Assembly: GCA_025594325.1 (NCBI GenBank) | Contig: JANHCV010000002.1 | Span: 2,542,001-2,606,000 of the forward strand | Direction of reading: 5' to 3' | From: Blastocladiella emersonii ATCC 22665 | Taxonomy: Eukaryota; Fungi; Blastocladiomycota | Length of the DNA: 64,000 nucleotides | Shown: positions 631 to 25,104 of the stretch, one piece after another | Position numbering within the stretch: the first letter of the stretch is position 1 | Layout of the letters: each line of letters begins with the position of its first letter | Notes under the pieces: model-generated | Database searches by the model: none | The model's input: only the letters and a program-made list of their open reading frames with translations | What the model was told of the DNA's origin: nothing | Translations under genes and position numbers: made by a program

Positions 631-1997
631 TGTGATCTGACCCAAGTCGCTCAGATTGCGGCGTTGGTGCGTGGCAAGGGAGATGCGACGGATCCAGGCA
701 GTTGATATCGTTCCCAGGAGCCAATTCATTGCATCAAGTGCGAGAGCTGGGCATCGAGCTCCGCGTTGTCCCCGCGGTCTCGCCCAGGGAGCGCGCCAGG
801 AGTGCTCCACGACGCGTCGCGCCACACTCGCTGGCCAGCGAGCGGGCTGGAGATCACCCGCGCCGGTTAACGGTGGAATGGATTTCTCGTTTTTGGCACC
901 ACGTCGGGTCAGCGGTGGACGCGAGGTTTATCACCGCGTGAGGCGCCGCCCGCTTTCCCACTGCCGACCACCACGAAGCGAATGGAAGCACAGTCTAGAC
1001 CACGACGTACAACTTGATGCAACGGGTGTTTACCGCTGATTTGAACGAGCCTTGGGCGCCACGAGTGAGTCTTCGAGTACGCGACGCCACTGCAGTCAAC
1101 CGTACGCCGCCGCGGGGTTGCTTACGGCCGCCTCCACCTCGCAGGAAGCGGATCGGTTGCCTGAATCCTAAACGAAAGATGCAGGTTGAGCCGGATGACT
1201 TTGATAAATACGAGGCGTGCCGAGCGACGCTGTGGGCCGATCGGGAGAGCCTCGCGTTTTTCAACCGTTGACGCTGCTGTATGTGCTCCTCCGCTTCAAC
1301 TGTCCGAGTGACAGGAGACGCTGATGACCCACGCGTTTGGCGGGTAGGACCCGAGCGGCTCACACGATGTGCACGGCAAGCAAAGCCACACAGGATGCGA
1401 CAGGCAACCGAACAGCTTTCGATTGCCTGCATGTTCTCCTGTCGCCCTCGCTGATGTCGACCTGATCTGTACACCGCGTATGCGGCTTTACGCCCGTCCT
1501 GTTAACGAGCTTTCCTAGTGGAGGGTCTCCGCGTCGCACAAGACAAGCAACAATGTGCGTGTGCTCGTGGGTTTCTGCGCGACACAGAGTGTTACACAAT
1601 TGCGTTACCGAGAAGAAACGCTTTGGCTGCAGCTCAACTCTCACCCACCTTCCTGCACCGCGCTGTGTAGGCCGCACTCGCTCGGGCGCCGTGAAATGAC
1701 CGCGTCGCCCGCGCGAGTGCGGCCCTCTGTACAATCTCATGGTCGCAGCGCGGTGCACGCTGGTTGCGGTGGGAGCTTTGGGCGCGGGGCGGCGTTTGTC
1801 GATTGCGTGCTCCTACCATGATTTGGAATATAGAAAGCAGGGTACTCGGAGCGGTACTCGAGGAGATCGGTGCGCGCGTCTGCAGCAGCAGCCAAAGACG
1901 CGTCGCGCCACTCACGTTCTGCTTCCTCGCACGAATTTCGAGAAACTCGCCGCGAAAACAACTCAACAACTCACTACATAAGGTTCAAAACTACATC

Positions 1998-4900
1998 TCA
2001 CATGGCCCACGGAAGCAGGCCCTCCATCTTGACCGTCTCGCCCTCGGGCGTGCGCCGCTCGCTGAGGTGGACGCGCGCGAGCGACCCGTCGCCCGCGGGC
2101 CGCAGCTGCATGACGGCGACATACCCCTCGCGGTGCGCGAGCTTCTGGATCTCGTTGTTCGGCCCGCCCATGGTCGCGCGGATCGCCGCGCGGTCGTCGG
2201 CGTAAAGGTGCCAGAACGCCTCGTCGTACACCGCCATGACGATCACGCGGAACGCGGGCGCCGTCTTGCCGTCGACGAGCGACTTGATCGTGTCGATGAG
2301 CGACGTGCGCCACACGGTGCTCGTCAGCGTGCGGTGCGTCGGGTCAGCGGCGCCGTCGTGGTGGATCTGCCACGCGTCGCGCACCCGCTCGTGCGTGTCG
2401 AACAGCCAGTGCTGGACCGCCGGCTGGTGCTGCGCGTCGGGCCCGTTGCCGCCGCTGACAATATCAATGGCCACGACGTGCAGCCCGCGCCACACGGACC
2501 GCGTCGCGTCGACCTGGTTCTTGACGTCGACAATCGCGATATCGTTGACGGCGACCACCACGTCGCCCTGCTTGCGCGCCTTCTCGCTGAGCCCCTGCGA
2601 CAGCACGCGCAGCTTGTACCGCTTCGGGCACTCGAGCGCGCAGTGGTTGGGCAGGTCGGTCGACTCCATTTCCGCGTCGCACATGGGGCAGCTGACGCGG
2701 TGGAACTTGCACTCGTGCTGCAGGTGGTGCTGCACCGACCACCGCTTGACCGACGCCTCGCACCCGGCGCGCGCGTTGGGACACGGCCAGTCAAAGTCGA
2801 GCTGCTTGCACGGCGGGTGCTTGGCCGTCCCGACCACGAGGTGCTCCATGAGCCGCCCGAGCGGCATGTCGGGGGAGCCGCACCGCATCGGGCACGGCAC
2901 GACGACGGCGTCCGAGGCGCCCGCGAGCGACAAGGTCTTCATCGTCGTGGTCGTGTTGGGCGTCTGGGAACCGCACGCGTGTGAGTTGGCGGGTTTGCAA
3001 TCGCCGCCGACGAGGTGGGCGAGCCAGTCCCGGTACGACGCAATGGCGCCCGAGCTGCACCGCGTGCACATCGCCTGCTTCTTGGCGGCACCCAAGAGCA
3101 GCGACGACTCGCATGCGTGCAGCCAGTGGTCGACGAGGTCCGCCGAGGCCACGAGCGCGGTGCACGACCCGACGCCGCACGGCACCCTGCGCGCCGGGCA
3201 GCCCAGTACCAGGTGCTTGACCAGATGGCTGCGCGGGAACGTGGCCGCGCACTGGTCGCACCGCGCGGGCGCGTGGCGCTCGGGGCAGGCGAGCCGCATG
3301 TGGCGTCCGAGCTTGCCGCGCGACTCGCGCGCCGGGCAGAACCAGCACGCGACCGTCGCGTACGCGCACTCAACGACCGCGTGGTGCGTCGTCATGAGGA
3401 GCGGGACCGCGTCGGACTGGGAGGCGGGGCAGACGGCCGTGTGCGGGCACGGCACGCGCGCGTCGATGCACTCGGTCACGGCGTGGATGTGGTGCGTGCC
3501 GGGCGCGTACGCGATGTCGCAGTTTGGGTGAGGGCATCGCACGATGCCGAGCGAGCACTTGAACGCGACGTGCAGCGCCTCCTCGTGCGGCGCGTCAAAC
3601 GAGTGGCCGCACAGGTTGCGGCACGGCAGGCCGACGGTGGCCGGCTCGCGGACGAGCAGCGAGCCCGCGACGAGGCGGTGGACGGCCTCGAGGTACAGCG
3701 GGTGCGACGGGTCCATGCCGAGCCGCGCCAGCTCCGACGACAGCGCGCGCGCCGGGTCGCTGCCGAGATCGAGGTCGTGGCCCACGATCGCGTCCGGGTC
3801 GACGGGCCGCGCGAGCGGCGGCAGCAGAATGTGGTGCGCGACGAGGTGCTCAAACTCGTCCATCTTGACGTACTCGGGCGCGGGACAGCCCTCGATCGAA
3901 CAGGCGACGCGGTACGCGGGGCAGTCTTGGTTCAGGTGGCGGACGAGCCCGCCGACCACGTTCTCGGAACAGTGCGGGCAGCGCACGACCTTGGTCGCGC
4001 ACTCGAGCAACAGGTGTGCGTTGAGGTCCTTGATCGGCAGCACGGCGTCGCACCCGGGCGAGGGGCACGGTGCTGTCACCGTCGTCGCGTTCGGGCAGGC
4101 CGTGAGCAGGTGCGTGAACATGGCGCTGGTCGCGCCGCCCACCACCAACACGCCGCAGCCGGGCGTCGGGCAGCGGCGCTCAAAGTTGGCGCACGTGTCG
4201 AGGTGCGCGCCAAAGGCGCCCCACGACTTGATCAGCGCGCCGCAGCCGTGCGGGCACGGCACGGTAGCGTCCTCGGCGATCGTGACGGCGGAGGGGTCGC
4301 ACACCGCGAGCAGCGCGGGCGAGCCGTTGGCGTCGCAGCAGCCACCACCGGGCAGCACGATTTTGGGTGTCGTCCCGTCGGGCCCGTGGTGCAGCGAAAG
4401 GGCGCCGCACGCGCTGCCCGTCGCGGGCGCGAGCAGGGCCTTGGCGCAGGTGCGGAGGTGCGCGACGAGGGCCTCGTCGTCGGGCAGCGACTCGTCGCAG
4501 AACCGGCACCGCCCGCTGTACACGTTGGGCAGGATGCGCGTCTTGAACAGCTGGCGGACACACCCGGGCACGTTGCACGGCACCGACGGCTTGCACTCGC
4601 GGCGGTGCGCCTCCTCGTTCTGTCGGAGGTAGATGCCGGTGCACCGCGCGCACGTCGTCCAGCACGCCTCGCGCGAGTGTCGCAGCAGCCGCGCCTCGAC
4701 CGTGTCACCGTCCACGTACGGCACCATCTCGGCGCACCGCGTGCACTTGATGTCGCGGCGGGCGCACTCGTACGTCTCGTGGACCTCGCGGTCGCGCGCG
4801 ACGACCGACGCGCGGCAGAAGGTGCACGCGACAATGTTCTTGGCGCACACGTGCTGCAGGTGCGCGGCCATGGCGCCCGCGGGCACCAGCGCGCCGCACC

Positions 4901-7900
4901 CGGCCTTGGCGCACTTTTCGACGGACTTAACGACGGCGGGGCAGTCGACCTTGAGGTGGAAATTGACGTCGAGCACCTCGGTCGCGCAGTGCGGGCACGC
5001 CGTGCGCGTGCGCTCGTCGAGCTTGGCCATCTCCTTGCACCCGCTCGCGCGGTGCGAGTCCACGGCGTCGCGCGCGACCATGCCGTCGCACGCCACGCAC
5101 CGCACGAGCGCCTTGGGGCACACGGCCGAGTGCGCGTCGACCGTCGGGTCGGCACTCACGACGGCCTGGAAGCACGCGGGGCACCGCGTCGTGGGCGGGG
5201 CGCTGGCCGGCGGCGCGGGCGGCGCGCTCGCCATGGCGTCGGTCGCCTCCTGCAGCTCCTTGCGCAGCTCGGCCGCCGCGTCCTGCTCTTTCGCGGAGGC
5301 GCTGTTCGGGAGCATGGGGATGCGCGAGCCCGGCGGCGTCTGCACCTTGGGCGGCTCGGGCTCCGTCGAGCACTCGCCGTCGACCCACGGGTAGTACTGG
5401 CCGACCGATGCCGCCGCGTCCGTCTTCTCGCTGTAGTCGGCAGCGAGCAGCGTCACGAGCACGTCGGCGAGGACCCGCAGGAAATTGCCGCTGGTCGACA
5501 CCTTGAGCCCAAACTTGAACTCGGTGCCCAGAATCACGGCGTGCACGTTGAGGTACGCCTGCGCGCCCGCGTCGCCGCTCGCCGCGTCGACCTGGATGCC
5601 GCCCCCGAAATGGATCGAGTGCACGTCGATGAGCGCGGCCGTGAGCTTGGCGAGGACCGACGTGACGAAGCTGATGGCCTTGCCCGCAAGGTCCACGACA
5701 AACGACACGGCGCTCAGGAGCGCGCTGCCGAGCGCGTAGAAGAACCCAATGCTCGAGTTGCGGCGCTTCTCGTCCAGCTTGTCCTTGGCGGCCTTGAGCG
5801 CCGCCTTGCTCGTGTCCACGAACCCCCTGCACGCGTCGCCCAGAATCTGGAACAGGCACTGCACGAGGCCGGCCGACCCGAGCGTGCCGTCGGCGTTCTT
5901 GGTCGCGCCGAACAGGCGCAGGTTGAGCCCGATCTCGGACGGCACCATGAGCAGCCGCGCCGGCGGGAACGCCTCCTCGACCATGGGCTGCACCGCGGGC
6001 GGGACGAGCGACTGGAACCCGAGCACGAAAAAGCCCGACAGGCAGATGGCGGACTGCGCGCCCGACAGCATGATGGTGGCGGCGAGCGTGAACCGCGTGC
6101 GGCCCGTCTTGGGGTGCCGCTTGAGCTGCGCGCGGCACTCGACGGCGAGCTTGACGAACAGGTCGAGGTGGATGTAGGCGGCGAAATCAAACTCGAGCAG
6201 GCCCTTGGCCGTGTCGAGCTCGAGCGTGCACTTCATGGCCGCGGCGAGGTCGTGGCTACTGCCCGCGAGCACGAGGCGCCCGCCGAGCCACTTGACGGCC
6301 GACAGCGTCGCGTCGAAATGGACGAGCGCCGTGGGCAGCGACGCGAGCGACACCGCAGACTTCTTGGGATCGAGACCCGTCGCAATGGCGCTGCCCTCGA
6401 TCTTGGCCTCCATCCCGAAAAACGACAGCTCGCACCGCGCGGCAATCGCCATGCTGCCCGCCTCGAGCGCCTTGTTGTCGATGAGGTACTGGCGCATGCT
6501 GCCCTTGTCCGAAGACGTGCTGCCGCTGCTCATGTCGGGCAGCGCGCTCACGTCGGCGTGGGCCGTCGGGTCGAGCTTGAAGAAAAGCTCGAGGTGCTTG
6601 ATGCCCGGCAGCACCCGCTCGACCCACGCGAGCCCGCGCAGGAGCGCGCTGTTCTCGCCGACAAACGGCGCGAGCAGGCCCGTGAACGACACGTCCTTGG
6701 CAACCGAATAAAAGAACTTGAGCGGGGGCAGCTTGAGCGACACAGCGCCCAGGACGGGGTACGACATGGCCGGGTCGTGGATCTTGAGCCCGCCCGAGAA
6801 GCACACGCTCGGCTTGGCCTCGCCCAGCTCGATGCCGAGGCGCAGGCCCTTGAGGTAGATGCTGCGCAGCGCGTCGGCGAGGTCGCCCAGCGCGATCCAC
6901 GCCTTGGCCGCCGCGGGCTCGAGCGAAATGTCGGCCTTGAGCACGAGCGGCGAGACGCCCAGCGTGGCGGCGAGCGAGCCCGCGAACCGCGCCCACGGCT
7001 TGCCGTCCACGCGGATCGTCATGGCGACGGCCACGTCAATGTCGGTCCGCGTCAGCGTGAGCTTGTTGGCGTCAAACTTGATGCCCTCCCCCAAATCGAT
7101 GGGCGGCAGGAACCCGTGCACGGCAAACACCTCGCCGAGCTGCAGCACGCCCTGGACGGACTTGCCGTCGAGGCCGAGCGGCTGCCACAGCGCGCCCTCG
7201 AGCCGCAGGCGCAGGCTCGACTGCACGTTGAAGCCCTTGCCCGTGTACTTGCCGCCGCCCTTGCCCGCCTTGGCGAGCTCCTCGGCCGTGACGAGCGGCG
7301 GGTCCTGCTTGGCCGACCACTTGGGCAGCTGCTTGAGGATGATGTCCGTCACGTCATCGTCGTCGATGTCGACCTTTTTGGCGGCGTCCTTTTTCTCGAC
7401 GGCGGTGGTTGCGGTCGTGGTGGCGGGATCGCTCGGCAACGACAATGGCTCCTTGGCCGAGTCGGCGGAGGCGGCGCTGCTCGCGGTCTCGATCCAGTTG
7501 TAGCGCATGTCGAGCCACACGAGGTCCAGCTGGACGGGCGACATGTCGAGCACGTCCTTGACCACGTCGGGGAGCGACGCGTTGACCAGGTCGGTGAGCG
7601 CCGTGGACCCGTCGGCGGCCGCCTCGGGGAGGCACGCGACGCGTACGCCGAGCTTGCCGTCCTGGACGCGGCACATGACGGCGACGGGCACCTCGAGGTG
7701 CGAGAGCGTGCACCCGACGACGAACGTGAAGGTCGACTTGGACAACTTCGCGACATCCTCGGCGGCGGCGGTGCCGCGGTCAAAGGCGAGGCCGATCGTG
7801 TAGATGCGGACCGAGAGCAGCTCGGACAGCAGCTTCTCGACCGACGCGTCAGCCGTGAAACTCGAGTCAATGGCCTGGATGAGCATGAGCGCCGTGAGCG

Positions 7901-10900
7901 GCTTGGGCTTGAGCGCGCGGCCGAGGATCAGCACGTTGCCCGCGGTCGTGACGCTGCCGGCGAGCGCAATCTCCTGCTCCTCGAGCGCGCGGCTGTTGAA
8001 CAGCGCGCCCGGGTTGTTGACGAGGATGCCGAACCGCGTTGGCGCGCGCTTGGGCGCAACGGTAGCGACGGCCGTCGGGGTAGACGCGGGACCGGCCGAC
8101 TTGAGCTGGATGTTGACGCACAGCGCAATGGCGGCGCCGTTGAGACGCGGGTGCAGCGCGCCACTCGACTCGGCGAGCGAGACCTGGATGAGGACCTCGC
8201 CGGCACCGGCCTCGAACAGCTTCTCGAGTCCGGGCGGCAGCGACGGCTTCTTGGCGAGCGCGACAACGGCGGCGGCGGCGGCAGCTGCCGTGTCGTCAGT
8301 CTTGTCGGCGTCGTTCTTGGCGACTACGAGCTGCTGCTGCTGCGCCGCGTCGGCGGCGGCAGTCTCCTCCTCCTTCTTGCCGCCCTCGTCCGTCTGCTCG
8401 TCAGCCGATGACTCGCCCTCCTTTTTGCCGTCAGCATCGTCGTCGTCAGTGGATCGGTCGAGAACCGCGAGGTACTTTTTCTGCATGGGCTGCTTCATGG
8501 CGAGGATGCGGAGGTTGGCCTTGGCGCCGAGGCCGTCGAGGACGGGCGCGATCTTGACCAGCTTGGCGTGCGACACGACGGCCTGCCCGCGGAGCGCCCA
8601 GTCGTCGAGCGAGCCCTGCACGCGGAACATGGTGGCGGCGACCGAGAACTTGATGTCATCGAGCAGCGTCAGCTCGCCCTCGGCCTGGTACACGTCCACG
8701 GGGATCTTGGCGGGCGCGGCCGAGTCGGCGCCGGCGGCCGTCTGCTTCTGCTCCTTGGCCGACGCGGTGCTGGCCGACGACTCAGCTGCCGACGTGGTCG
8801 CCGCAGACTTGGACTTGGACTTGGACTCGGCAGGATTCGCGGCGGCGTCAGCGGCGCCCTCCTTCTCAGGACCTGCAGCGGCAGCGGCGTCGGGGTCCTT
8901 GACCTCGTCGAGCTGCTTGTACGTGAGCCGGACCTTGTCGAGGGACAGCTGCACGCTGTCGCCGATCCCGAACAGCACCGCGAGGTCGACGTTGCTGATC
9001 TCGGCGACGAACGCGTTGCCCGAGGTCGGCGAGCGGAGCACGAGCATCGAGAAGGCGGCCTTCTTACCCGTGTCGTCGTCCCACTTGGTCGCGAGGTCCG
9101 AGGTGGCGGCGTAGGTGATGGCGAGCAGCGACGAGCGCGGCGGGAGGTCCTCGGCCTCGTCGTCATCGGCCTTGGCGGGCGCATCAAGCTGCCCCGCCGC
9201 AGCCGGACGACGGGCGATCGCGTTGGAGCGCGGGCGCGTGACATTGTCGATCGAGCGGTCCACGGCGTTGGCGCGTGGGCGCGTCAATGTCGCAGTCGCG
9301 GTCTCGTTGGCGGCGGGCGAGGACGAGGATGAAGAGGTCGAGGAGGTCGTGGGCGGCACCGAGGAGCTGCGCGGGCGGCGTGCCACCGATTTCTGCAACG
9401 AGGGGTCCGACGACGGTTCGGCGGCGGGCGCGATGCTCGGCGCGTCCGTGTCGCTGCCGGTCTGCTTGTCAGCCTCGCCGACCTGCTTCTCGGCGGCAGC
9501 CCCGGCCTCCTGCTCCTGCTTCTTCTTCTTCTTGGCCTCCTGGTCGTCGTCATGGCTGGCGATCAGCTTGAGCAGGCCCTCGGTCGAGATCGGGTCGGTC
9601 GCGTCCTTGATAATGAAGGGCTTCTTGGGGTCGGCGAGCTTGAACCACGACAGGTACCGGACCACGAGCTGCGCCTTGCCCTTGGGCAGGAGGAACTGCA
9701 GCCACTCGGGCGACACCTCGTACAGGTTGGCGCCCGCAACACCGAACGACACGTCGAGCATGCGGCGCGGGACCCAGCACGCGCGCGCGGCGACAGCAAC
9801 CTGGTGCGGATCAGCCGCGACCGTGGTCTTCTTCTCAATACTCGTCTCCTTGGTCTCGGTCAGCGAGCTGATGGCGGTGGTGGTCGCCGAGGTGGTCGAG
9901 GTCACGACGTGCGGCGCAGCGGCAGCGACAGCGTCGGCCCACGCGAGCTCAAGCATGCCGTTGAACTCGGCGACCGTCGGCCCGTCGAGCGGGACCGCGA
10001 TGGTCGCGTTGGCGGCGCCGTGCAGCGACATGAGCGGGTGCCCGTCCTGCAGCGCGATCGTGTGGTCGAACTCGACCTCGGCGCGGCCGGCACCGCGGAC
10101 CTTCCACAGGCTCTCCTCCTGCTTCTCGGCCGCCGTCGAGCTTGCGGCCGCGTCGACCGTCTTGGCCAGATTGGGCTCGGGCGACGCCGCAGCCGAATTT
10201 TCGGCGGTCTCCTTCTGCTTGTTGGACGCCAGGCGGACGACGTCGATCTCGAGGCTCGCGGCCGTGAGGCGTAGGACCTCGCTGCTTGAGGGCACGGCGA
10301 GGTTGACGGAGCCAAAGCGCTTGAGTGCGCGCGCGACGGCCTTGCTGCCCTTGGCCTTGAGGGACAGCGACCAGTGGTGGTCCTCGCCCTCGTCGGGCGC
10401 GTAGGCCAGCATCACCGTGGCGGCGTGGACCGCGCGCGTCTTGGGTTTCTCCTCCGACTGCTGCTCCGTGTCCGACGTCTTGGCCACCGCAGCGGGCGAT
10501 GACGAGGCGAGGGACTCGTCGTTGGCGGGCGGGAGCGAATCGGGCGGCTTGGCGAGCGAGGGCGACTCGGGCTTCTCGTTGTTGGTGGACTCGAGCGCGG
10601 GCGCAGAGGTGGGCGACGAGGGCGACTTGGCGTCGCCGTCGCCGTCGTCCGAGTCGGGCTCGGCGATCTTGAGCGTCAGCTCGGCGGCGGCGAGGCTCGG
10701 CTTGAAGCTCTTGAACACGAAGCGCGCTGAGCCGCTGCACTCGTCGAGGCCGAACGTCGCGGGCGCGTCGTCGCCGCCGCTGCCGTCTTTCTTCGTCTCG
10801 GCCGACGGCAACGACGCAGATGCCGTTGCGTTCGGCTCGGCGGCGTCGACAGAGGGTGGCGCAGGCGCGGGAGCACTCGGCTCGCCAGCGGCCGACGGCG

Positions 10901-13230
10901 GCGTGGGCACGGGAGCGTTGGGCTCGACGGCGGCCGGCCCTACGGCCTTCTCGTTGATGCGCTTGCCGTCCGACTTGCCCTGGTCCTTCGGATCCGAGCC
11001 GGCGGCCGAGGAGGTCTCGCGGTTCTTGCCCTTGTCCTCGTCGGCCTTGGGCGGCGGCGCGACCTTGAACTCAATGAGCAGCTGCGTCTTCTCGCGGACG
11101 GCGAGGACGGCGGCGACCGAGTCGAGCGAGAGCGGGCCCAGCGGGCAGCCCGGGAAGAAGAGGATCGGGTTGGACTTGCCAGGGAGGTATTCGAGTTCGA
11201 TCGAGTACGGCGCCCACTTCTGCTTGGGCTTCTCCTTCTTCTTGTCTTCGGCGCCTGCGTCGGCGTCTGCCACAGCGGACGCAGCGGCGGGCGCAGCGGC
11301 GGTGGCGGCCTCAGACTCGGCGGGCGCAGACGCGCTCTTGCCCTCGCCAGCCCGCGAGCCAGGCTCGGCGGCGGCCGCAGGGACCGGCAGCGAGGGGTCG
11401 AGCTCACCCAAAACGCGAGCATCGGCGGACGAGGAGCGCTGCTTGCGCGGCGCGGCCATGGCCGGGTCAGCGTTCGAGGACGACGCGGTGACCTTGGATT
11501 CGGCGGGCTCGCGCACGGCGCCGGTAGCCGACGGTGTGGCGGGAGCAGATGCGGCCGAAGGCGCTGCGTCGGCGGACCGACCGGCGGGCGCCGTCACGAT
11601 GGCCTTGGCGCGCGGGCGTGTTGTCGACGAGCTGGTGGGCGTGGTCTCGGGCTGCTGGCCGGCGGTCAACGACTCAGTCTGCTTCCCGCTCTTCTCGCCG
11701 TCGGCCGAGTCGCCACTCTTCTCCTTCGTCTCGACGGGGACCTTGACGAGCATGATCTTGGCCTTGAACGTGTGGCCCTCGAGGAAGCCGAGGCCGTCGG
11801 GCGCTGACGAGACCGTGTAGGTGGCGACGATGCCAGCGCGCGCAATGTCCTTGCGCTCGAGCGGCTCGAGCTCCTTGTCCTTGTCGTCGGCGCCCTTGCT
11901 GCCCGACTTGTCCGTCTTGGCGGCAGGCTTTGCGCCCAGCGCATCTGTGTCCGCCGTCGCGTCGCCGTCCGAGATGCCCGCGTCCGACGGCGCGTCGTCG
12001 CGGTCCGAGTCGCGCGCGTCAGACTCCGCGTTGCCCGCTTCGGCCGCGGCGGCCGCAGCAGCAGCAGGGAGGACAGCTTCGCCGGCCGGCGGCTCCTTGC
12101 CGTTGTCGTCGGACTTGGACTCGAGCTCCTTGCCGTTGGCGTCCTCGGAGTCGGCCTTCTGCTTGTCGGCGGCGACGGCCGACTCGTCCTTCTTCTCGGC
12201 GGCATCATCGTCATCTTCATCATCATCGTCGCCACCCTCGTCGTCCTTTGTCTCCTCATCGGTAGGCGGGCCGGCGACGAGCACGTTGACGACGTCGAGC
12301 ACGCCGCGCAGGTGGTACTTGCCAATCATCTCATCGAGCTTGGTGCGCGGGACGATCTTGTCGAGGCGCTTACCGGCAGGCTCGGACGGTGAGAAGGGCT
12401 GGTGCCACTTGATCTTGGCGAAGCGCGTGGGCGCGACGGGCTTCTTGTCGGTCTACACACACGAGAAACGAGTGAGCGGATGGACAAACGAGCGTGCCGT
12501 ATCGGCGCAGGCGTACCTTGGCGTCCTTGGACGCGTCGCTCGAGTCTTTGGCGGCGCTGGCTGCGTCGGCGGAGCGAGAACTGGCCGCATCGGACACGGC
12601 GGCGGTGGCGGTCTTATTGTTGGTCTACACACGCGAGTACAGAGTGAGTGGACAGACCATGGATCGAGTGCTGCGCGTGATAGTGTACCTTGGCGTGCTT
12701 GGACCCGTCGGTCGAGTCCTTGGCGGCGCTGGTCGCGTCGGCGGGGCCGGGGTTGGCCGCGGCCGAGGCGACGGCGGCGGTAGGAGCGGGCTCGGGAACA
12801 GGAGCAGTGGTTGAGGCCGACTAGTTGGCGCAATGGAGCGAGTGAGCACGCAGTGACCTACGTCAGGACGTGAGCCGACGCGTACCGGCTTCGCGACAGG
12901 AGAGCGGCTCGGAGCGCCATCGTGCGAGTTGACGGATGTCGCCGATACAGGATCGCGTCGAGGAGGTGCGAGTGCAGGTGCAGGTGCAGGGGTCGAGGGA
13001 GCAGCAGCGCTCACGGGTGGAGCAGCGCGAGCCGCCGACGGGGCGGCGGGAGCAGGCGCGACGGCAAAGTCGACGCCCGAGTCGGCGCGAGCGTGTATCG
13101 GTGCATGGGTCGATTCATGGTGGCGATTGCGTGGAGTGCCGGGTGCCGATGAGGTCGGCGAGGGAGGGCCTGAAGGCGGAGCAGCCGCGGCGGCCGAAGC
13201 GCGTGCCGCCGGAGACGCGTCACGGTCCAT
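1998..13230 (-). CDS. Giant (~3,680 aa) protein: low-complexity N-terminus, long beta-rich region, hydrophobic helical segment, ~23 TRAF-type Zn fingers, C-terminal ILEI/PANDER-like domain
   Basis: The 3443-aa ORF extends upstream through three phase-0 GT..AG introns (12453-12516, 12625-12688, 12821-12885) to ATG 13230 (MDRDASPAAR...). Exon lengths 345/132/108/10455 are all multiples of 3. Repeated C-x2-4-C...H-x3-4-C units lie at ~2620-5190. C-terminal WRGLHVVAID...FDT...RVIVMAVYDEA...IQKLAHREGY motifs are ILEI-like. Confidence 0.85.
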
Positions 13231-13805
13231 TCCGGGTGGTCGCCCAACTAGGCAAGGCGGGGCGCGTGGGTCAGCCAGACGAGATCGGGGGACGTGCGAG
13301 ACGCGCCGCACGCACAGTTGTTGATGCGAGCGCTGACCGAGGAGCACACGACGGCTGCTTGGACACAGGCGGAGCAACGGCGAGGACGTGAAGCGGCGCG
13401 CCGAGTGGGCCGGATGCGTGGAGACCCGAGAGCCCGCGACGGCGTGAAGAGGTCGGCGAGGACGAGAGAGCGAGCGTGAACGGCGGTCCGTCGAAGCCGA
13501 TCTGACTTCCGCGACTGCGCCATCTCGCCGGCCCGCAGATCCCAGCGCTTCCCTGCTATTGGGTTTCGCTGTTCCCGAGCGCCCCCAAACCCGGCGCCTT
13601 CTCGAACCGCGTGCACATCCGTTGTTCCGCCGAATCCTGTGGCTGGAAGCGGCCACTTTGCCCGAACATACCCTTCGGATTCTCCTCCAGGACCAGCAAG
13701 CCCGTCGCTCAACCTTCGCCGCGCTCCCTCTCCCGTCTCCCCTCCTCGATCGTCCGGTAATCGGCCGCGCGACCCGACCTGCAGCACTCGTCACGCACCA
13801 CTACC

Positions 13806-16190
13806 ATGGCCACCAAGCAGCAGACGCGCCGCGTGCACTCGCCGCTGACCGACACCATCACGACGCTGCAGGACCTCACGTCCGCGCGCGCGTGGCCGTC
13901 GTGGCGCGCCCGCGTCGAGGACATGCTCGCCGCCGACGGGTGCAAGTTCCTCATGCCCGCGCGCGGCACCGATCCCGCCGCCGTGCCGACCGAGGCCCTC
14001 GTCACGCAGCTCGCCGCCCGCCTCAAGTCGCTGCACAAGCTGAGCTCGGACGCCGACGCCCGCGCCGAGGCCCGCGACCTGCAGTTCGCCTACTGCGCGC
14101 TGCTCCGCTCGACGCTCGCCAGCGACTGGTACGCGGTCGTCGCCGACGCCGAGTGCCCGACGGCTCTGATCGCCGCGCTCGAGGCCCACGCCGCCGCCGA
14201 GTCGGCCAAGGCCGCCGCTCTCGCCGCCAAGAACAAGTCGTCGTCGTCGTCGTCGTTGGGCGGCGTCAAGGCCGAGAAGGTCATCCCGCTCATCCTCCAG
14301 GACAAGAACAACGCCTTCAACCACGCCGAGCTGACCCAGCTCGTCGACCAGCTGTGCGGCTCGCTGCTCGACCGCGACGAGGCCGTGCGCGTGCTGCTGC
14401 TCAGCGTGCTCTCGGGCCAGAACGTGCTGCTGCTCGGCCCGCCCGGCACCGCCAAGTCGTACGCCGTCAACGAGACCATGAAGCGCATCGTCACGCCGCG
14501 CCCGCACTTTTCGACCACGCTGCACGCCACCTCGACCGTCGACGACCTGATCGGCCCGATCGACGTGCAGTCGCTGACCACCGTCAGCGTGTCGCAGCGC
14601 AACCTCGGCGGCATGCTCGCCGACACGGAGCTGGCCTTCCTCGACGAGATCTTCAAGGCGTCCAAGGCGACGCTGTCGTGCCTCATGACCATCCTCAACG
14701 AGCGCCGCATCGCCAACGGCTCCACCATGGTCGACACGCCGCTGCACGTGTGCTTCGGCGCGTCCAACGAGGTGCCGCTCGAGGCGTCGCAGGCCGCGCT
14801 CATGGACCGCTTCCCGCTGCGCGTGTTCGTCGACTACGTCAGCCCGACCACGCGGCTCGCGCTGCTCGGCTTCCTCGGTACCGACACGTCGTCGTCGTCG
14901 TCGCCCGTGCTGCGCATCAACCTCGGCGACGTGGCCGACGTCAGCAAGCGCGCGCAGGCGCTCGGCAACGTGCTCGCCGACCCGGCCATGCTCGCGCTGT
15001 TCACGGACCTGCACGAGTACATCAACGGCGCCCTCCTGCGCGAGGCCGAGTACCGCGCCGCCGGTCCTCCTCCCGCCACCGCTGCATCTACTTCAACCAG
15101 CACCGCCTCGACGGGCGTGCGCAAGGGCGGCTCGGCGTGGATGGACTCGCTGTTCGCGGGCGGCAAGTCGGGCGTGTTCGGCGCGCAGTCGCAGCAGACG
15201 TACGGCGGGTGGCTGCTCACGGACCGCGGCATCGTGGTGCTGCTCAAGGTGCTGCGCGTCGTCGTGTTCGCGCACGGCCGCACCAAGGCCAACCCGCTCG
15301 ACGTGTACCCGGTCGTGTACGTGGCGTGGCAGACCAAGGACCAGCACCAGTGCCTCGTGCAGTGGCTCGAGGCCCGCCTCGCCAAGGAGCTCGCCGCGCT
15401 CGCGCAGATCAAGGGCCGCGACGCTGTCGCCGCGACGGTCAAGGCGCACCTGTTCGTGCCCGACGCCGCCAAGCAGCGAATCCTCAACGGGTTCATGGGC
15501 CCCGCTCCCGCCGTCGAGACCAAGCCCGCTCCCGCGCTGGCCCCTGTGGCGCCAGCTGCCGAGCCTGCACCCGCCGTCGAGCAGAAACCCGCGGCCTCCG
15601 AGGTCTCGCTTCGCGTCGTGTCCATGGGCTTCAACGAGCGCACGGGCGAGCAGGGCACGTTCCGCGTCAGCATGGGTAACGCGGCGCCGTTCATCGACAT
15701 TAGCGGTCCGCGCGGCACCAACATGCAGTTCACCGGGCTGCACATCGTATCCATCGACGGGTTCACGGGCGGCCGGCCGACTGGGATTCAGCACTGGCTC
15801 GTCAACACCAACTCGCCCAAGCGCGAGGTGACGCGCCTGCAGTACTACGGCGATTCGGAGCCCGTTCGCTTTGAGCAGAAGACGATCGCCGAGGTCCTCA
15901 ATGACCTGGCGAATCCCGCCAAGGCGCTGGTGGGTCGTGTCGTCGTAATCGGCGTGTTCGACGAGGCGAGCGAGAACCTGGTCGACTTCAGCCGCATCAA
16001 GATCCAGACCGCGTCGGGCCGCGGCCAGCGTTCCCGGATCAGCGACCTTCGCTACCGCTCCGGCTACGCGTGTGCAGTTCAGATGCGGACTGGCGCCGAC
16101 GGGAACCTCACGCGCGTGTCCCTTGGCGAGGAGCTCTCGCCCGCGGGCGAGGTCGCTGAGCTTCAGTGTTCGGCCCTGTTTCCCAACTAG
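13806..16190 (+). CDS. RavA-like MoxR-family AAA+ ATPase with C-terminal ILEI/PANDER-like domain (794 aa, intronless)
   Basis: Motifs: LLDRDEAVRVLLLSVLSGQNVLLLGPPGTAKS (Walker A), LAFLDEIFKA (Walker B), TILNER, GASNEVP, ALMDRFPLRVFVDYV, and lid TDRGIVVLLKVLRVVVFAHGRTKANPLDV...W. All parallel RavA-subfamily motifs. Codon bias is strong and GC3-rich. Confidence 0.9.
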   Translation: MATKQQTRRVHSPLTDTITTLQDLTSARAWPSWRARVEDMLAADGCKFLMPARGTDPAAVPTEALVTQLAARLKSLHKLSSDADARAEARDLQFAYCALLRSTLASDWYAVVADAECPTALIAALEAHAAAESAKAAALAAKNKSSSSSSLGGVKAEKVIPLILQDKNNAFNHAELTQLVDQLCGSLLDRDEAVRVLLLSVLSGQNVLLLGPPGTAKSYAVNETMKRIVTPRPHFSTTLHATSTVDDLIGPIDVQSLTTVSVSQRNLGGMLADTELAFLDEIFKASKATLSCLMTILNERRIANGSTMVDTPLHVCFGASNEVPLEASQAALMDRFPLRVFVDYVSPTTRLALLGFLGTDTSSSSSPVLRINLGDVADVSKRAQALGNVLADPAMLALFTDLHEYINGALLREAEYRAAGPPPATAASTSTSTASTGVRKGGSAWMDSLFAGGKSGVFGAQSQQTYGGWLLTDRGIVVLLKVLRVVVFAHGRTKANPLDVYPVVYVAWQTKDQHQCLVQWLEARLAKELAALAQIKGRDAVAATVKAHLFVPDAAKQRILNGFMGPAPAVETKPAPALAPVAPAAEPAPAVEQKPAASEVSLRVVSMGFNERTGEQGTFRVSMGNAAPFIDISGPRGTNMQFTGLHIVSIDGFTGGRPTGIQHWLVNTNSPKREVTRLQYYGDSEPVRFEQKTIAEVLNDLANPAKALVGRVVVIGVFDEASENLVDFSRIKIQTASGRGQRSRISDLRYRSGYACAVQMRTGADGNLTRVSLGEELSPAGEVAELQCSALFPN

Positions 16191-16611: not shown

Positions 16612-19560
16612 CTACACATCCTCGGTGCACTCGCGCGCAAGTCGCTGCACCTCCTGGATTCCCACGCCTGCGCCCTCGAGCACGGACTCGACCTGGAACG
16701 CGACGCACCCGGCCTCGAGCCCGACGATCAGGATTGACTCGTCGGGCGAGACCGTGAGCCGCGAGATGAGCCCGCGGCCGACGTTGAGCGCGCCCCACGC
16801 GCCGCGCGGACGGTGGCCCGCGTCCATGTCCTCGGCCGAGTACCGCACGACCTTGCCAACGGGTAGCGGCGGCGCGCCGTCGAGCGCGTTGGGCCCGAAC
16901 CCATACAGCGCCTCGGGCGGGATGGTCGCGCCGTGCGACCACACGTCGTCGACGTCGAGCTTGCGCTTCCAGAGGTAGACGTCGTCGACGAACGGACACT
17001 GATCGCGCACGCGGATCAGCGACGAGGTCGAGGCGGCCAGGATGTCCTGCTGCGTCGGGACCGACTGCCGCGTCGACTTGAGGTCGACCGGGGTGCTGGC
17101 GCTCCGCGACGCGCAGGCGAGCGTTGGGCGGTACGCGTGCAGCAGCGGGATGTCCCAGAACCGGATCACGCCGTCGCGACCCGCCGTTGCGAGCAGGTCG
17201 CTCCCGCGCAACCACACGGCGTCGATGATCCCGACGCTCGTGTCCGCGTGTGCCACGGTGTCGTCTACACGCGAGCGACGCGAACTGTGAGAACACGCGG
17301 CGCGGATGGCGTTTCGGGCGGTCCGAACCCGAGTGCGGCAGAATGCCCAGTGCGCGCGTCTTGTCCGAGACGTCGATGACGACGAGCCGGTTGCTGCACC
17401 CGCCCGCGTACGCGTACCGGCCACACGGACTACACGGCGAGGGTCAGCCATGGTCGCGGAGCGGCCGCGCGTGTCGCGTACCTGAACCCGAGGACGTCGC
17501 AATCGGTCAGCCCGGTCCACCACGCGCACTCGACGACGGGATCTGCGATGCGCCGCGGGCTGAACTTGGTAGCCTCACCGATGGGCGCGAGCTTGACGAA
17601 CCACAGCCGCTGGTCGCCTGAGTTAGCGCCCGTGCGCCTGGCTTTTTCGCGCGGCGCCGTGATGAACGCGGCATACGGGCCGTGCGTGCCGTCGACGGCG
17701 GCCACGTCGACGATGGGGAACGGGTGCGCGATGGAGTGGCGCAGCGGGCCCGCGTCGGTGGGCGTGCGCCACGCCGCGTTGCCCGTCCCGGCGCAGCACA
17801 GCTCATTGATCTGGCGCAGGTCCCACACGATCAGCGCGGCCCACTGCGTGCCCTTGAACGTGTCGCACCCGGCCACGAGCCGGTGCGCGCCCGCGAACGC
17901 GAGCCGGTTGACGGGGCGCCGCTCGGCGTCGAGCAGCGCGAAGGACCGGCGGAAGTCGCCGCGCACGATGCGGGCCAGGTTGAAGACGATGAGGTTGCTA
18001 CATGAATGCGTGCGAGAAGGGCGTCAGTCGGCCGACCCTGAGACCCCGCGCCGCTAGAGAGGCCTACCTGTCCTGGTCGCCGACGGCAATCATCCACGGC
18101 GCCTCAGGCGACTGCGCGATGGCGATCGCAAACTCCGAGTCGCTGAAGGTGGGAAACTCGGGCGGGAGCGGGACGGGCGACCCGTCGTCGATGCGCGACA
18201 CAGCGAAGGTGCCGTTGACGCCGCCCGAGACGACCCAGTCGCGCCACACGACGACGGCGGCGACGGTGAGCGAGCAGCGCGGGGCGAGTGGGTTGGCGCC
18301 CGCGTTCGGGTTCGGGACCGAGTGAAGCTCGCGTTCCATGCGGTACGCGCGCGCCGTGAGATCGACGAAGATCAGGTTGCCCTCGCGGTTCTCCGAGTCG
18401 CCGGGTTTTGCGGCCGCGGCAACGACGAGGAGGCGGCTACACACAGAATCGAAAGTTAGCGCGCGAGTCGAGGGAGCGCTGGGTGGGTACAGGGCGCACT
18501 TGTTGGGCATCACGAGCATCTCCGTATCGCCACTCGTGGTCGGCAGGTTGAAGGCGAAGTTGAGCGACGCGAGCACCTCGCGGTTCATCCACTGCCGCAT
18601 CCCGCGCTGGTTGCCCGTGATCTCGGTGCGGAAGCGAAGATGCAGCCGGTTGATGCCGCCCGCGAGCGCTGCGTTGCCAGCCAGCGGAGCTTCAAATGCC
18701 AGTCTCCGCGGCGCAGGCAAGCTGCTCTCTGGCACCACGACAGCAATGTGTCGCTGCGGCGGCAAACCATTTTCGCCGGGCTTCTCGACGATGAAGGCAC
18801 CGACTGGCGCGCCACCGAGCCGAGCGTAAGCATCGAGCGCCGCTGCGTCGACCACGGGAAGCTCTGGATGCGGCGCCTCGGAGTCGGAATAGGCGGATAA
18901 GGCACCGTTCGTGCCCGCCTGAAGGATCGCGTGGTGGATCATGCGAAGCTGCTCCACGCTAAGCAAGTCGGTAGGCAACGTATTGGTGTGCTGCGGCGCG
19001 GGGTGCCGGTGCCTGCCCACACTCACGAGCTTGCCCGCGTGCAAGTGTCTGCTCCTGCGCACGAACAGGCTCGGGTTGTGACCGACCCCGTGCATGTCCC
19101 ACTTCTTCCAGTGTAACTGGACACGATGAGCGTCGCCGCGCGTGCGGATGGCAGGTCGCGACTTCGTTGGCGGCGGCTTAGGGATCTGCGGGATGAGACC
19201 GGCAACGAGCTCGTCCTCCAGGACCTCCTCGGCTTCACCCCAGTCGCCACTGGTCGTGTCCACATCCATGGCCGAGTCGTCCTCGTCCTCGTCGTCGCCG
19301 TCGCCCGTATCCGAGTCCGAATCCACATCCATGCAAGCGGTGCTCGACGTACGCCGCGCCCGAGGACGTGAGGGCGGCGGCGGAGCACGCTGGGCGTTCG
19401 AGGCGCCGCTCGACATGCTGGACACGCTCGAGACGCCGGAGTTACCCGAGCCGGGTCGGGACTCGGGCGTCGGCGACGACGAGGCGATGGTGATGACCTC
19501 ACGCGCGGGTGGGCGGCCTGCCGCGCCCGCTGCGCCAAGTGGGGCGCGGTTGCAATTCAT
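16612..19560 (-). CDS. WD40-repeat protein with acidic/low-complexity N-terminus (3 introns)
   Basis: ORFs 18064-19560, 17430-17966 and 16612-17529 join via GT..AG introns (first 17998-18067; others near 17430-17480 and 17265-17330). WD-like segments: WVVSGGVNGTFAV, ALIVWDLRQI, FSPCGRYAYAGGCSNRLVVIDV, LLATAGRDGVIRFWDI, ISRLTVSPDESILIVG. Confidence 0.75.
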
Positions 19561-21384: not shown

Positions 21385-22844
21385 TCAACGCCAATGCCCT
21401 CCTCGTCCTGTCGCTCCTGTGCGCCGGTACCGCCCGCGGCGCCGAGGTCGAACGCCGTGGTACGCGTCACGCGCGTGCTCGCATCACGTATCACTCGCGC
21501 CGGCGCTGACGCGTCCGCGGCGACGTGTAGAGCCGGTACAGCCGGGCGGTATCCCCGCGCCGGCGACGTGGCCTGGGACCGAGTACTCTGGCCATACCCA
21601 GCTGAAGCCGGACTCGTGGCACGGGTTCCTGGCCTGCACGGACTCGCGCAGTCTGTGGTCGCTGCGGCTCGACAGCCCGGTGGCGACGCGCCGCGCGACG
21701 TGACGGTCGACCTCGTTGTGTCGTACGAGGGCGCGAACATCAACCACGACACGCCGCACGCGTACCTGTGGGCCAACGGCCAGTGGGTCGCGCAGACCGA
21801 GGCGGCCGACCCCGTCAACGAGAAGTGCGCCGACACCCACGAGCAGTCGCCCGAGGTCGACACGCTGTGCCTGGCCAACCCGAACGCGCCCAAGCTGACG
21901 GCCACGCTCCCCGCCGGCACCGAGCGCTTCGCCTTCACGCCCATCACCGGCACCAAGTGCATGATGGGCATGTTCCGGTACCGCTTCACCTCGCCGCCCG
22001 CGTACTGCACCCCGACCAGCGCGCCCGACTACGTCGTCCCGCGCACCGCGGCCGGCACCGCTGCGGCGGCCGGGCTCCACGTCACGCAGCTCGCGTGTGC
22101 TCAGGTCAACCCCGATCTCGCCGACGTCATGTCCAAGAACGCCGTCGACGTGGCCAAGGGTACGCGCGCGAGTCACCTCTACGCCGTTGCGATGCGGTCC
22201 CTGATCCTCGACCGCCGCGTGTAGCCGGCATCGAGTGCATCGGTCTCGGTAAGCAGGCGCTGGTCGCGAGCTGGGAGGGCAACTCGTACGATCAGCCCGG
22301 GCTTCTCCTCGCGCTGCCTCGTGTCGCTGGCAAGGTACGCGTGTTCCTTCCTCATCCTCGCATAGCTCTCTCGCTCACGCTGCTCGACGCGTAGCTTCCC
22401 TCGGTCAATGTCGCCGAACCGTCGGCCTCGCTGCCGCCCATCTGCAAGCTGCGCAAGACCGGCGAAACCGAGTTCGGCCTGGTCCCGGGCACCGACTCGC
22501 CGATCCGCGTCGTGCGCGTCGCCGAGGACGTGGACGGCGCGTCGGCCGCCGCCGTGTGCACGCGCCACGGGTACACGCTCGCTGACATCAAGACGGGCGA
22601 CACCTTCACCGCGGCGTCGGGCATCGTCCACCAGGCGCTCTGCAAGAGCGGCACCGCGTGGATCCACTCGTACGACGGCGACTCGTACACGGGGTCGTGC
22701 GTCGCGCTCACGGCCGGCGACGCGGGCGACAAGCTCGGCAGCGTCACGGTCCCCGCGGGCGGGTGCACGGCCAAGCTCGGCGCGGTCCTGTGTCAGACGG
22801 TGGCGGCCGCATCAGCTCCGATGCAGCGCCGCAGCGAGCTCTGA
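21385..22844 (+). pseudogene. Secreted Cys-rich protein with two C-type-lectin-like modules, copy 1; disrupted (no in-frame ATG, 1-nt frameshift)
   Basis: Collinear with 23623-25104, including three identical intron positions. The signal-peptide frame (NALLVLSLLCAGTARGAEVERR) has no ATG after an upstream TGA TGA. The reading frame shifts at ~21678 (stop TGA 21701-21703). An assembly indel cannot be excluded. Confidence 0.6.
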
Positions 22845-23622: not shown

Positions 23623-25104
23623 ATGCAGCTCATCAACGCCCTCCTCGTATTGTCGCTCCTGTGGGCCGGCACTGCGCGTGCCGCCGAAGTCGATCGCCGC
23701 GGTACGCATCGCGTTCGCATTCGCGCACACGCGCGACGCCGGCTGCTCACTAGAACCACGGCCACGACGCGTAGCGCCTGTGCAGTCGGGCGGCATCCCC
23801 GCGCCCGCGTTCTGGACGGGGTCCGAGTACCCGACCGACCCGTCGCTCAAGGGCATCATCAAGGAGAACACATGGACCCCGTTCACGGCGTGCGCGCGGG
23901 ACCCGTACTGGTCGGTCCACCTCGACCACCCCGACGCGGTGGCGCGCGGCGCGACGGTCGACGTGCTCCTCACCTTCTACAACGTCGCCGTCGAGCGCGA
24001 CTCGTTCCACGCCCTGGTGTGGGCCGGCGGCAAGTGGGTCGCCCAGACCGAGGCCGCGAGCCCCGTCAACGACCACTGCGCCCCCATCTACGCGCAGCCG
24101 TCCGAGATCGAGGCGCGGTGCGCCGGCAACCCGAACGTACCCAACCTCTCCGTGACGCTCCCGGCCGGCACCGAGCGCTTCGCGTTCCAGCCCATCACGG
24201 GCAACAAGTGCACGGCGGGCTTCTACCGCTTCCGCATTCCCGCGGCGCCCAAGTTCTGCGCCTCGACCGCCGCCCCCGACTACGTCGTCCCGCGCACCAC
24301 GGCTGGCGACGTTATGAAGGCCGCGCTCCCCGTTGCACAGCTCACGTGCAACCAGATCGGCGCCGATCTCGCCCCCGTCACGTCCAAGAACGCGGCTGAC
24401 GTCGCCAAGGGTACGCGACTCGTGCGCGTGTCGCTCATGCTCGTATGGTTCGTTACTGATCCCCAGACTCCGCATGTAGCCGGCATCGAGTGCATCGGCG
24501 CCAGTAAGCAGGCGCTCATCGCGAGCTGGGACGGCAACTCGTACGACCAGGCCGGTCTGCTACTCACTCTGCCCAGCAAGGCGGGCAAGGTATACCATAT
24601 TCAGCATATCCATCGTGCCGTCCAGTCGGCTAACCTTCACTGGTCCGCGCGTAGCTCCCCTCGGTCAACGCGGCCGACCCGTCGGTCTCGCTGCCGCCCA
24701 TCTGCAAGGTGCGCAAGGCCGCTGAGGTCGAGTACGGCCCGATCACTGGGACCGACTCGCCAATCCGCGTCGTGCGCGTCCTCGACGGCGTTGATGGTGC
24801 CTCGGCCGCCGCCGTGTGCACGCGTCGCGGCTACACGCTCGCCGACCTCAAGACGGGCGACACCTTTACCACGGCGTCGGGCATCACGTACCAGGCGCTC
24901 GGCAGCGGTGGTGCCGCGTGGATCCACTCGTACGACGGCGACGCGTACGCCGGCACCTGTGTCGCCCTCACGGTTGGCGGCTCGGGCACCCAGGCCGGTA
25001 GCGTCACGGTCCCCGCGGGCGGGTGCACGGCCAAACTCGGCGCGGTCGTGTGCCAGACGACGGCGCCCGTGTCGGCTCCCATGCAGCGCCGCAGCGAGCT
25101 TTGA
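23623..25104 (+). CDS. Secreted Cys-rich protein with two C-type-lectin-like modules, copy 2 (intact, 3 introns)
   Basis: Signal plus propeptide MQLINALLVLSLLWAGTARAAEVDRR; an uncharacterised N-terminal beta domain; then two A-x-x-C...LA(D)...A-W/L-I-x-S-W/Y-DG-x-x-Y modules. Ends PMQRRSEL*. The GT..AG introns keep the frame. Confidence 0.8.

Follow-up and report, generated by a model that had tools for sequence, protein, structure and literature searches.

We analysed a stretch of 64,000 nucleotides from the water fungus Blastocladiella emersonii ATCC 22665 (Blastocladiomycota), the strain to which the annotated paralogue H9P43_002783 also belongs; this whole stretch (C11:2542001-2606000) is referred to as the window, and positions in it are counted from its first letter. 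The window harbors a gene for a RavA-like AAA+ ATPase and, head to head with it on the opposite strand, a gene for a giant protein with multiple TRAF-type zinc fingers (Table 1). The open reading frame (ORF) of the ATPase gene encodes 794 aa and is open throughout with 0 stops, and since its translation is identical to the full-length database protein P0001, the gene consists of a single exon, as a preliminary description of the locus had stated. The G+C content is about 0.70 in the ATPase gene and the same in both of its flanks, thus the composition is fully native, with no anomaly.

Table 1. Features of the ATPase locus, with positions in the window and residue (res) numbers of the ATPase.
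Feature	Position	Strand	Remarks
Left arm of 13.9-kb inverted duplication/conversion tract	1627..15539	.	partner C11:2624356-2610445, beyond the window, 52 kb away
Giant multi-TRAF-zinc-finger gene	1998..12329	-	main ORF 3443 aa, annotated model 3545 aa
C-terminal ILEI-like domain of the giant	2001..2630	-	30% identical to ATPase tail
Divergent intergenic region, giant to ATPase	12330..13805	.	presumed shared promoter; annotated giant model may reach slightly in
RavA-like AAA+ ATPase gene	13806..16190	+	single exon, 794 codons and stop
N-terminal region, res 1-174	13806..14327	+	conserved within Blastocladiella only; without Pfam family
AAA+ alpha/beta core, res 175-353	14328..14864	+	PF20030/AAA_5
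Walker A GPPGTAKS	14436-14459	+	in AAA+ core
Walker B FLDEIF	14637-14654	+	in AAA+ core
Core-lid insert, res 354-469	14865..15212	+	part helical, part low-confidence/low-complexity (S/T/A-rich)
RavA-type AAA lid, res 470-520	15213..15365	+	PF17868; sensor-2 R474
Post-lid helices, res 521-575	15366..15530	+	clade motif HLFxPDxxK
Ala/Pro-rich linker, res 576-600	15531..15605	+	13.9-kb tract end at ~15539
Divergent ILEI/FAM3/POMGnT1-stem-fold domain, res 601-794	15606..16187	+	

MoxR proteins, including RavA, are chaperone-like motors that form rings and, jointly with a partner protein, act upon particular target complexes, and they are usually treated as prokaryotic motors that work with von Willebrand factor A (vWA) proteins. 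In the B. emersonii ATPase, Pfam recognizes the bpMoxR family (PF20030, E-value 1.1e-38) and AAA_5 (2e-19) in the core, and AAA_lid_8 (PF17868) with 24 bits when the lid segment is scanned alone. The top sequence match among solved structures is E. coli RavA (4.8e-27, residues 176-350), and when an AlphaFold2 model of residues 165-600, computed with 54 homologues (predicted local distance difference test, pLDDT, of 85), was compared with known structures by Foldseek, the four best matches were all RavA chains (~1e-15 over ~375 aligned columns), the next MoxR structure following at 3e-11. The motifs quoted in the preliminary description are all there and conserved: the alignment of the 54 homologues is invariant at G211, P212, G214 and K217 of Walker A, D280 and E281 of Walker B, N321 of sensor 1, D334/R335, and R474 of the lid. 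Thus, the protein has a RavA-like MoxR architecture, with a PF20030 core followed by a RavA-type lid and with all catalytic motifs; since RavA is its nearest neighbor in fold and the catalytic residues are invariant, the motor is of the RavA type, as previously proposed, and judging from the intact motifs it looks catalytically competent.

The protein is nevertheless not RavA proper, as the NCBIfam equivalog model NF010054 gives it 114.8 bits against a cut-off of 681 and covers residues 176-347 only. Pfam finds PF20030, AAA_lid_8, LARA_dom and ATPase_RavA_C in E. coli RavA itself, while neither the LARA domain (PF20265) nor ATPase_RavA_C (PF12592) has a match in the fungal ATPase at E<=1. The two proteins share the AAA+ core and the RavA-type lid, and in both a C-terminal extension presumably selects the target; the fungal protein differs in carrying an N-terminal extension of ~175 residues, an insert of ~110 residues before the lid and an ILEI-fold tail. 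For the N-terminal extension, neither Pfam nor NCBIfam returned a family. A region with the motif W-x3-h-x3-L in this extension (13806-14330) is kept in Blastocladiella britannica.

The C-terminal 194 residues, where RavA carries LARA, had been assigned to the ILEI family in the preliminary description, and this assignment holds at the level of fold and remote homology, although the existing family models are blind to it: residues 601-794 have no Pfam match at E<=10, do not reach the 27-bit threshold of the ILEI model PF15711, and have no NCBIfam match. An AlphaFold2 model of the tail (pLDDT 84) was compared by Foldseek with the PDB, and all 16 of the 16 best matches were to the POMGnT1 stem, FAM3B-PANDER or FAM3C-ILEI, with E-values from 2e-4 to 7e-3 and template modelling (TM) scores of 0.55-0.68; in the ESM Atlas, the model matched three PF15711 clusters (TM 0.61-0.65, root-mean-square deviation 2.3-3.0 Å). 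A profile built from the B. emersonii copies of the tail, when compared with PDB sequences, likewise ranked the POMGnT1 stem (E 0.075) and FAM3C (E 0.12) at the top, with a common order of motifs, RG-hHhhhhD, FDT, hhhhhh-DE-s-L and LG-R. The sole canonical PF15711 domain found by a genome-wide search (C1:3095123-3095395, 79 bits) lies in a 1212-aa frame unrelated to the ATPase family, and hhalign aligned the tail profile to it with 89% probability (E 2e-6, 124 columns). Accordingly, the tail is a divergent offshoot of the ILEI/FAM3 fold that lies outside the Pfam model. It shares its fold and motif order with ILEI/FAM3 and the POMGnT1 stem, but differs from them in having no match to the Pfam hidden Markov model and in occurring in at least seven divergent copies in the genome, among which are those on a second ATPase copy, on a decayed third copy, on the neighboring giant and on a giant paralogue on C18. 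Moreover, ILEI/FAM3 proteins are secreted or Golgi-lumenal, whereas the B. emersonii carriers are presumed to be cytosolic. A 409-aa ORF elsewhere in the genome (C4:146957-148186; L019:2957-4186) consists of two tandem divergent ILEI-like domains and nothing more.

As the nearest bacterial relatives of the ATPase are encoded in RavA-ViaA-like operons, e.g. in Aeromonas, where the gene for a 684-aa protein precedes that for a 557-aa vWA protein, a partner protein is to be expected for this class of motor. The preliminary description had noted that a vWA partner is lacking. Indeed, the Pfam vWA families have no match in the ATPase or in the giant, which leaves room for a cryptic vWA fold, and the other neighboring genes were not scanned; the ViaA-type family VWA_CoxE has 0 matches genome-wide, while PF00092 and the remaining vWA families were not searched at this scale; and VWA_2 matches in the genome only on C1 and C4, unlinked to and far from every ATPase copy. 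This part of the earlier claim therefore stands for the families searched, but it had overlooked a conserved neighbor in which no vWA domain was detected, namely the giant. The only Pfam families found in the giant are zf-TRAF and CEP104_ZnF. Pfam at E<=5 and a sequence search of the PDB revealed nothing besides the TRAF fingers in its first 2400 residues, an ESM-Atlas feature search with its first 2000 residues gave no informative match, and a word-index search with its middle region retrieved only B. emersonii paralogues.

The pairing of the two genes recurs both within the genome and far outside it. In B. emersonii, a giant zf-TRAF gene and an ATPase gene stand head to head at both C11 copies and at a diverged locus on C18 whose ATPase copy is frameshifted in the P-loop. 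In Allomyces arbusculus, the ATPase P0004 is encoded 1.2 kb from a divergent gene for a 4111-aa zf-TRAF protein, which matches the B. emersonii giant with 3e-27 in a tblastn search. Two ATPase genes of the amoebozoan Pelomyxa schiedti have a zf-TRAF neighbor as well: 300 bp separate P0131 from a divergent gene for a 2229-aa zf-TRAF protein, which is homologous to the giant over 1289 columns (1e-18), and at a distance of 2 kb from P0132 a 2076-aa protein with zf-TRAF and CEP104_ZnF is encoded; the spliced Pelomyxa neighbors were searched as separate ORF pieces with their exons unjoined. On a further Pelomyxa schiedti contig, JAHLWZ010000601.1 (L030:1-5976), the gene for the third RavA-like protein of this species, P0130, likewise faces a gene for a 4057-aa giant with DUF3638/DUF3645, for which TRAF fingers are not recorded. 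From this conserved gene order we conclude, with moderate confidence, that the giant zinc-finger protein probably is the functional partner of the motor, in the place of ViaA.

One may argue that the adjacency is coincidental or reflects a shared bidirectional promoter only, and that the ATPase serves other clients through its ILEI tail, e.g. glycosylated proteins. Some members of the clade do lack a giant neighbor, and the ILEI fold is known to bind glycans in the POMGnT1 stem; yet a homologous giant recurs head to head in Allomyces and in an amoebozoan, and a gene pair conserved over such a depth is rare in eukaryotes unless the two genes are functionally linked. Thus, we consider a mere coincidence of position unlikely.

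The PF20030 'bpMoxR' ATPases have been described from bacterial MoxR-vWA(-beta-propeller) systems (Kaur et al. 2020, PMC7159879). Compared with such systems, of which the Aeromonas 684-aa protein is an example, the B. emersonii locus has a motor of the same Pfam family that is likewise encoded beside a large partner; it differs in that this partner is a giant multi-TRAF-zinc-finger protein in which Pfam detects no vWA domain, and in that the two genes form a divergent eukaryotic pair and not an operon.

The preliminary description had further interpreted the gene as a bacterial-type ATPase acquired horizontally, in its full form a bacterial RavA that was transferred into the fungal lineage, refitted with an ILEI domain, and left to act alone without a partner. 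A first word-index search seemed to agree with this, as only Blastocladiella and Allomyces stood above the bacterial plateau, and among fungi the Blastocladiales are alone in the databases searched. However, as the claim of a private transfer rested on the absence of relatives, we conducted an exhaustive search with a Blastocladiales profile. Among the best 150 of its 6771 matches, so that the breadth of the eukaryotic clade given here is a lower bound, the following stood above the bacterial plateau: B. britannica, three proteins of Pelomyxa schiedti (KAH3760538, KAH3766681 and KAH3757805, all from spliced genes on contigs of 57-164 kb), the transcriptome-derived protein EP00759_P003441 of the prokinetoplastid Apiculatamorpha spiralis, which has an N-terminal RanBP zinc finger, one EukProt transcript with ankyrin repeats, and several long metagenomic proteins. 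When a profile of the eukaryotic clade was used in a word-index search, only bacterial proteins came back and even the Pelomyxa sequences contained in the profile were missed, thus this search is no measure of the eukaryotic breadth.

We then constructed a tree of 73 rows with IQ-TREE under the LG+C20 model. Not included were P0002, which has an identical sequence over the region compared, P0003 and P0029, which are degenerate or fragments, and any bacterial row that shares more than 70% identity with a retained one. In this tree, the Blastocladiales proteins, including the Allomyces relative AMAG_02560, form a clade with B. britannica, Pelomyxa, Apiculatamorpha, the EukProt transcript and three unlabelled metagenome proteins with a support of 100/98, apart from all bacterial rows including E. 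coli RavA and with no bacterial sister. Placed next to this clade are Vitrella brassicaformis and a metagenomic protein that carries ankyrin, while the green-algal proteins of Nannochloris and Polytomella nest elsewhere, among bacteria. The branch of the outgroup E. coli YehL, used in a quick tree only, was saturated at 10, and we draw no conclusion as to the root. The motor lineage is therefore patchy, and every taxonomically labelled member of it is a eukaryote, in contrast to E. coli RavA; we hold this evolutionary placement, as well as the anatomy described above, with high confidence.

These results speak against acquisition from a bacterium as proposed. The nearest relatives are eukaryotic, with Vitrella nearby, the composition is native, the partner gene is conserved, and the intron-free state is no evidence of a recent transfer since the Pelomyxa relatives and one Allomyces paralogue are spliced. 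Although the wider RavA-like family is overwhelmingly bacterial in our searches, and although the gene lacks introns and no vWA partner was found, we regard the transfer of a bacterial RavA to this fungal lineage as quite improbable. At the same time, the eukaryotic clade amounts to a near refutation and not a complete one, as the family is patchy rather than widespread: the lineage may be ancient with many losses, or it may go back to one bacterial import that then spread among eukaryotes, and the data fit either course. The Pelomyxa, Apiculatamorpha and Allomyces relatives are annotated as 'hypothetical' or 'AAA family ATPase' and are all unstudied. They share with the B. emersonii protein the clade, the post-lid motif, and the possession of N-terminal extensions and variable tails, and several have a giant zf-TRAF neighbor; they differ in that none has an ILEI-fold tail and that their N-terminal extensions are unrelated. 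In place of the ILEI domain, other members of the clade have LIM, ankyrin, coiled-coil or RanBP-ZnF domains, of which LIM, ankyrin and coiled-coil occur as tails.

Within B. emersonii, the giant gene and most of the ATPase gene lie in one arm of an inverted duplication (Table 1). The two arms are 99.885% identical and differ at 16 positions: a single one lies in the 13.6-kb interior, and the other 15 are all within ~250 nt of an edge. Up to ~15460 the identity stays at 100%, but at 15540, within the Ala/Pro-rich linker, it breaks down; past this point, the ILEI-coding parts are ~50-66% identical in DNA, and the 3' flanks are unrelated. We rejected an assembly artefact as the source of the repeat, since the flanks of the arms are different and the differences are clustered at the edges. 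The tract looks like a recent gene conversion between old paralogous loci that stopped just before the tail. The two intact C11 giant genes are identical, and the two intact ATPases are identical over residues 1 to ~578, whereas their heads, as we call the ILEI domains on the different copies, are only 37% identical. As the tract stops in the linker, the two intact copies share a motor but carry different heads. Among paralogues, the ATPase-borne heads are 34-38% identical, compared with ~66-86% for the C18 copy outside its head, and are the fastest-changing part of the protein, while the giant-borne ILEI heads, with 59% identity, are comparatively conserved. The ATPase C-terminus thus behaves as an exchangeable targeting module.

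The multiplicity of copies raises the question of whether the ATPase gene, alone or along with the giant gene, is carried or has been left behind by a selfish or mobile element, its copies, pseudogenes and patchy phyletic distribution being due to mobility and not to a host function. Besides the two intact copies there are two decayed ones of full length and smaller fragments at C15:112572-113359, C18:363178-363747 and C18:631477-631967, and the annotated 524-aa protein P0029 (C18:260268-260782) combines a fragment of the ATPase lid with a match to Helitron_like_N of 23 bits, which is below the cut-off; this may be a gene fragment captured by a Helitron. In addition, a language model gave the ATPase N-terminus a weak likeness to copia-type Gag N-terminal families (scores 0.76-0.80), which we treat as a lead only, and Pfam finds no Gag there even at E<=10. 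No transposase, integrase or terminal repeats were found to frame the gene pair, the duplication is a conversion-like tract between old loci and not an insertion, and the catalytic motifs have been kept across deep divergences. We therefore think it improbable that a mobile element accounts for the gene.

Taken together, our preferred reading is that the ATPase is an active-looking RavA-type MoxR motor whose partner or substrate is the giant TRAF-zinc-finger protein encoded head to head with it, that the two make up a hitherto undescribed eukaryotic module of two proteins, and that the ILEI tails serve as targeting parts; we assign this reading a probability of roughly 0.55. Its starting points are direct observations: what the domains are, that the motifs are intact, that the clade is eukaryotic, that the gene pairing is conserved and that both proteins have the tail; the oligomeric state, the physical interaction, the ligand and the cellular role are what we infer, and our confidence in the ligand and the cellular role is low. 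According to this reading, the lineage would have dropped LARA, RavA_C and the vWA partner ViaA, and variable C-terminal domains would have come in their stead. By analogy with RavA and other MoxR proteins, the ATPase would form a ring and act as a hexameric remodelling motor, which may remodel or assemble the TRAF-finger scaffold provided by the giant, or else complexes that form on this scaffold. The ILEI fold mediates dimerisation in FAM3C, in addition to glycan binding in the POMGnT1 stem, and the tails on both B. emersonii proteins could guide the two either to one shared ligand, perhaps a glycan, or towards one another. The tail would then be the exchangeable targeting part and the motor the constant part.

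Several results weigh against the coupling of the motor with the giant. Firstly, B. britannica P0124 and the second Allomyces paralogue P0121 have no giant neighbor. Secondly, the ILEI tail occurs in 0 of the other clade members sampled, thus coupling through the tails cannot explain how the pair works in general. Thirdly, two of the four full-length ATPase copies (C18:634815-637176 and C18:366483-368589) are decaying, one by a frameshift at residue 220 in the P-loop and the other by three in-frame TAA stops, and these copies together with the scattered fragments, one of them beside a Helitron-like piece, could mean that the gene is dispensable or selfish. A search for RNA evidence listed no run, and a complex prediction for the ATPase tail and the giant tail, made without controls, scored 0.00; it gives no verdict and was not used as evidence in either direction.

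A broader interpretation, which we put forward as tentative only, is that the pair belongs to an old, undescribed eukaryotic two-protein machine that is present in Blastocladiales and Archamoebae, its motor having relatives among kinetoplastids and chromerids, and in which the zinc-finger giant replaces the vWA partner. In B. emersonii, gene conversion would keep motor and giant identical at two loci while different lectin-fold heads are retained, which resembles a logic of sensing, defence or self-recognition. The TRAF-type fingers, the variable heads, the turnover of paralogues and the decayed copies would fit a role in sensing or in conflict. To the prokaryotic picture of MoxR/RavA motors, these results add a lineage with eukaryotic members that has neither the vWA partner nor LARA and has interchangeable tails, and they correct the reading of the ATPase as a bacterial gene in a fungus. 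A pairing with the giant that extends from a water fungus to an anaerobic amoeba is of unusual depth for eukaryotes and provides a handle on two unannotated families, and the two heads on one motor constitute a natural experiment in motor retargeting.

Two further observations concern the rest of the window. Long minus-strand ORFs (16612-17966) lie directly downstream of the ATPase gene. Further along, the segments 21767-22844 and 24018-25104 form a direct repeat of ~1.1 kb with 78.6% identity, which probably corresponds to a tandem pair of lectin-like genes.

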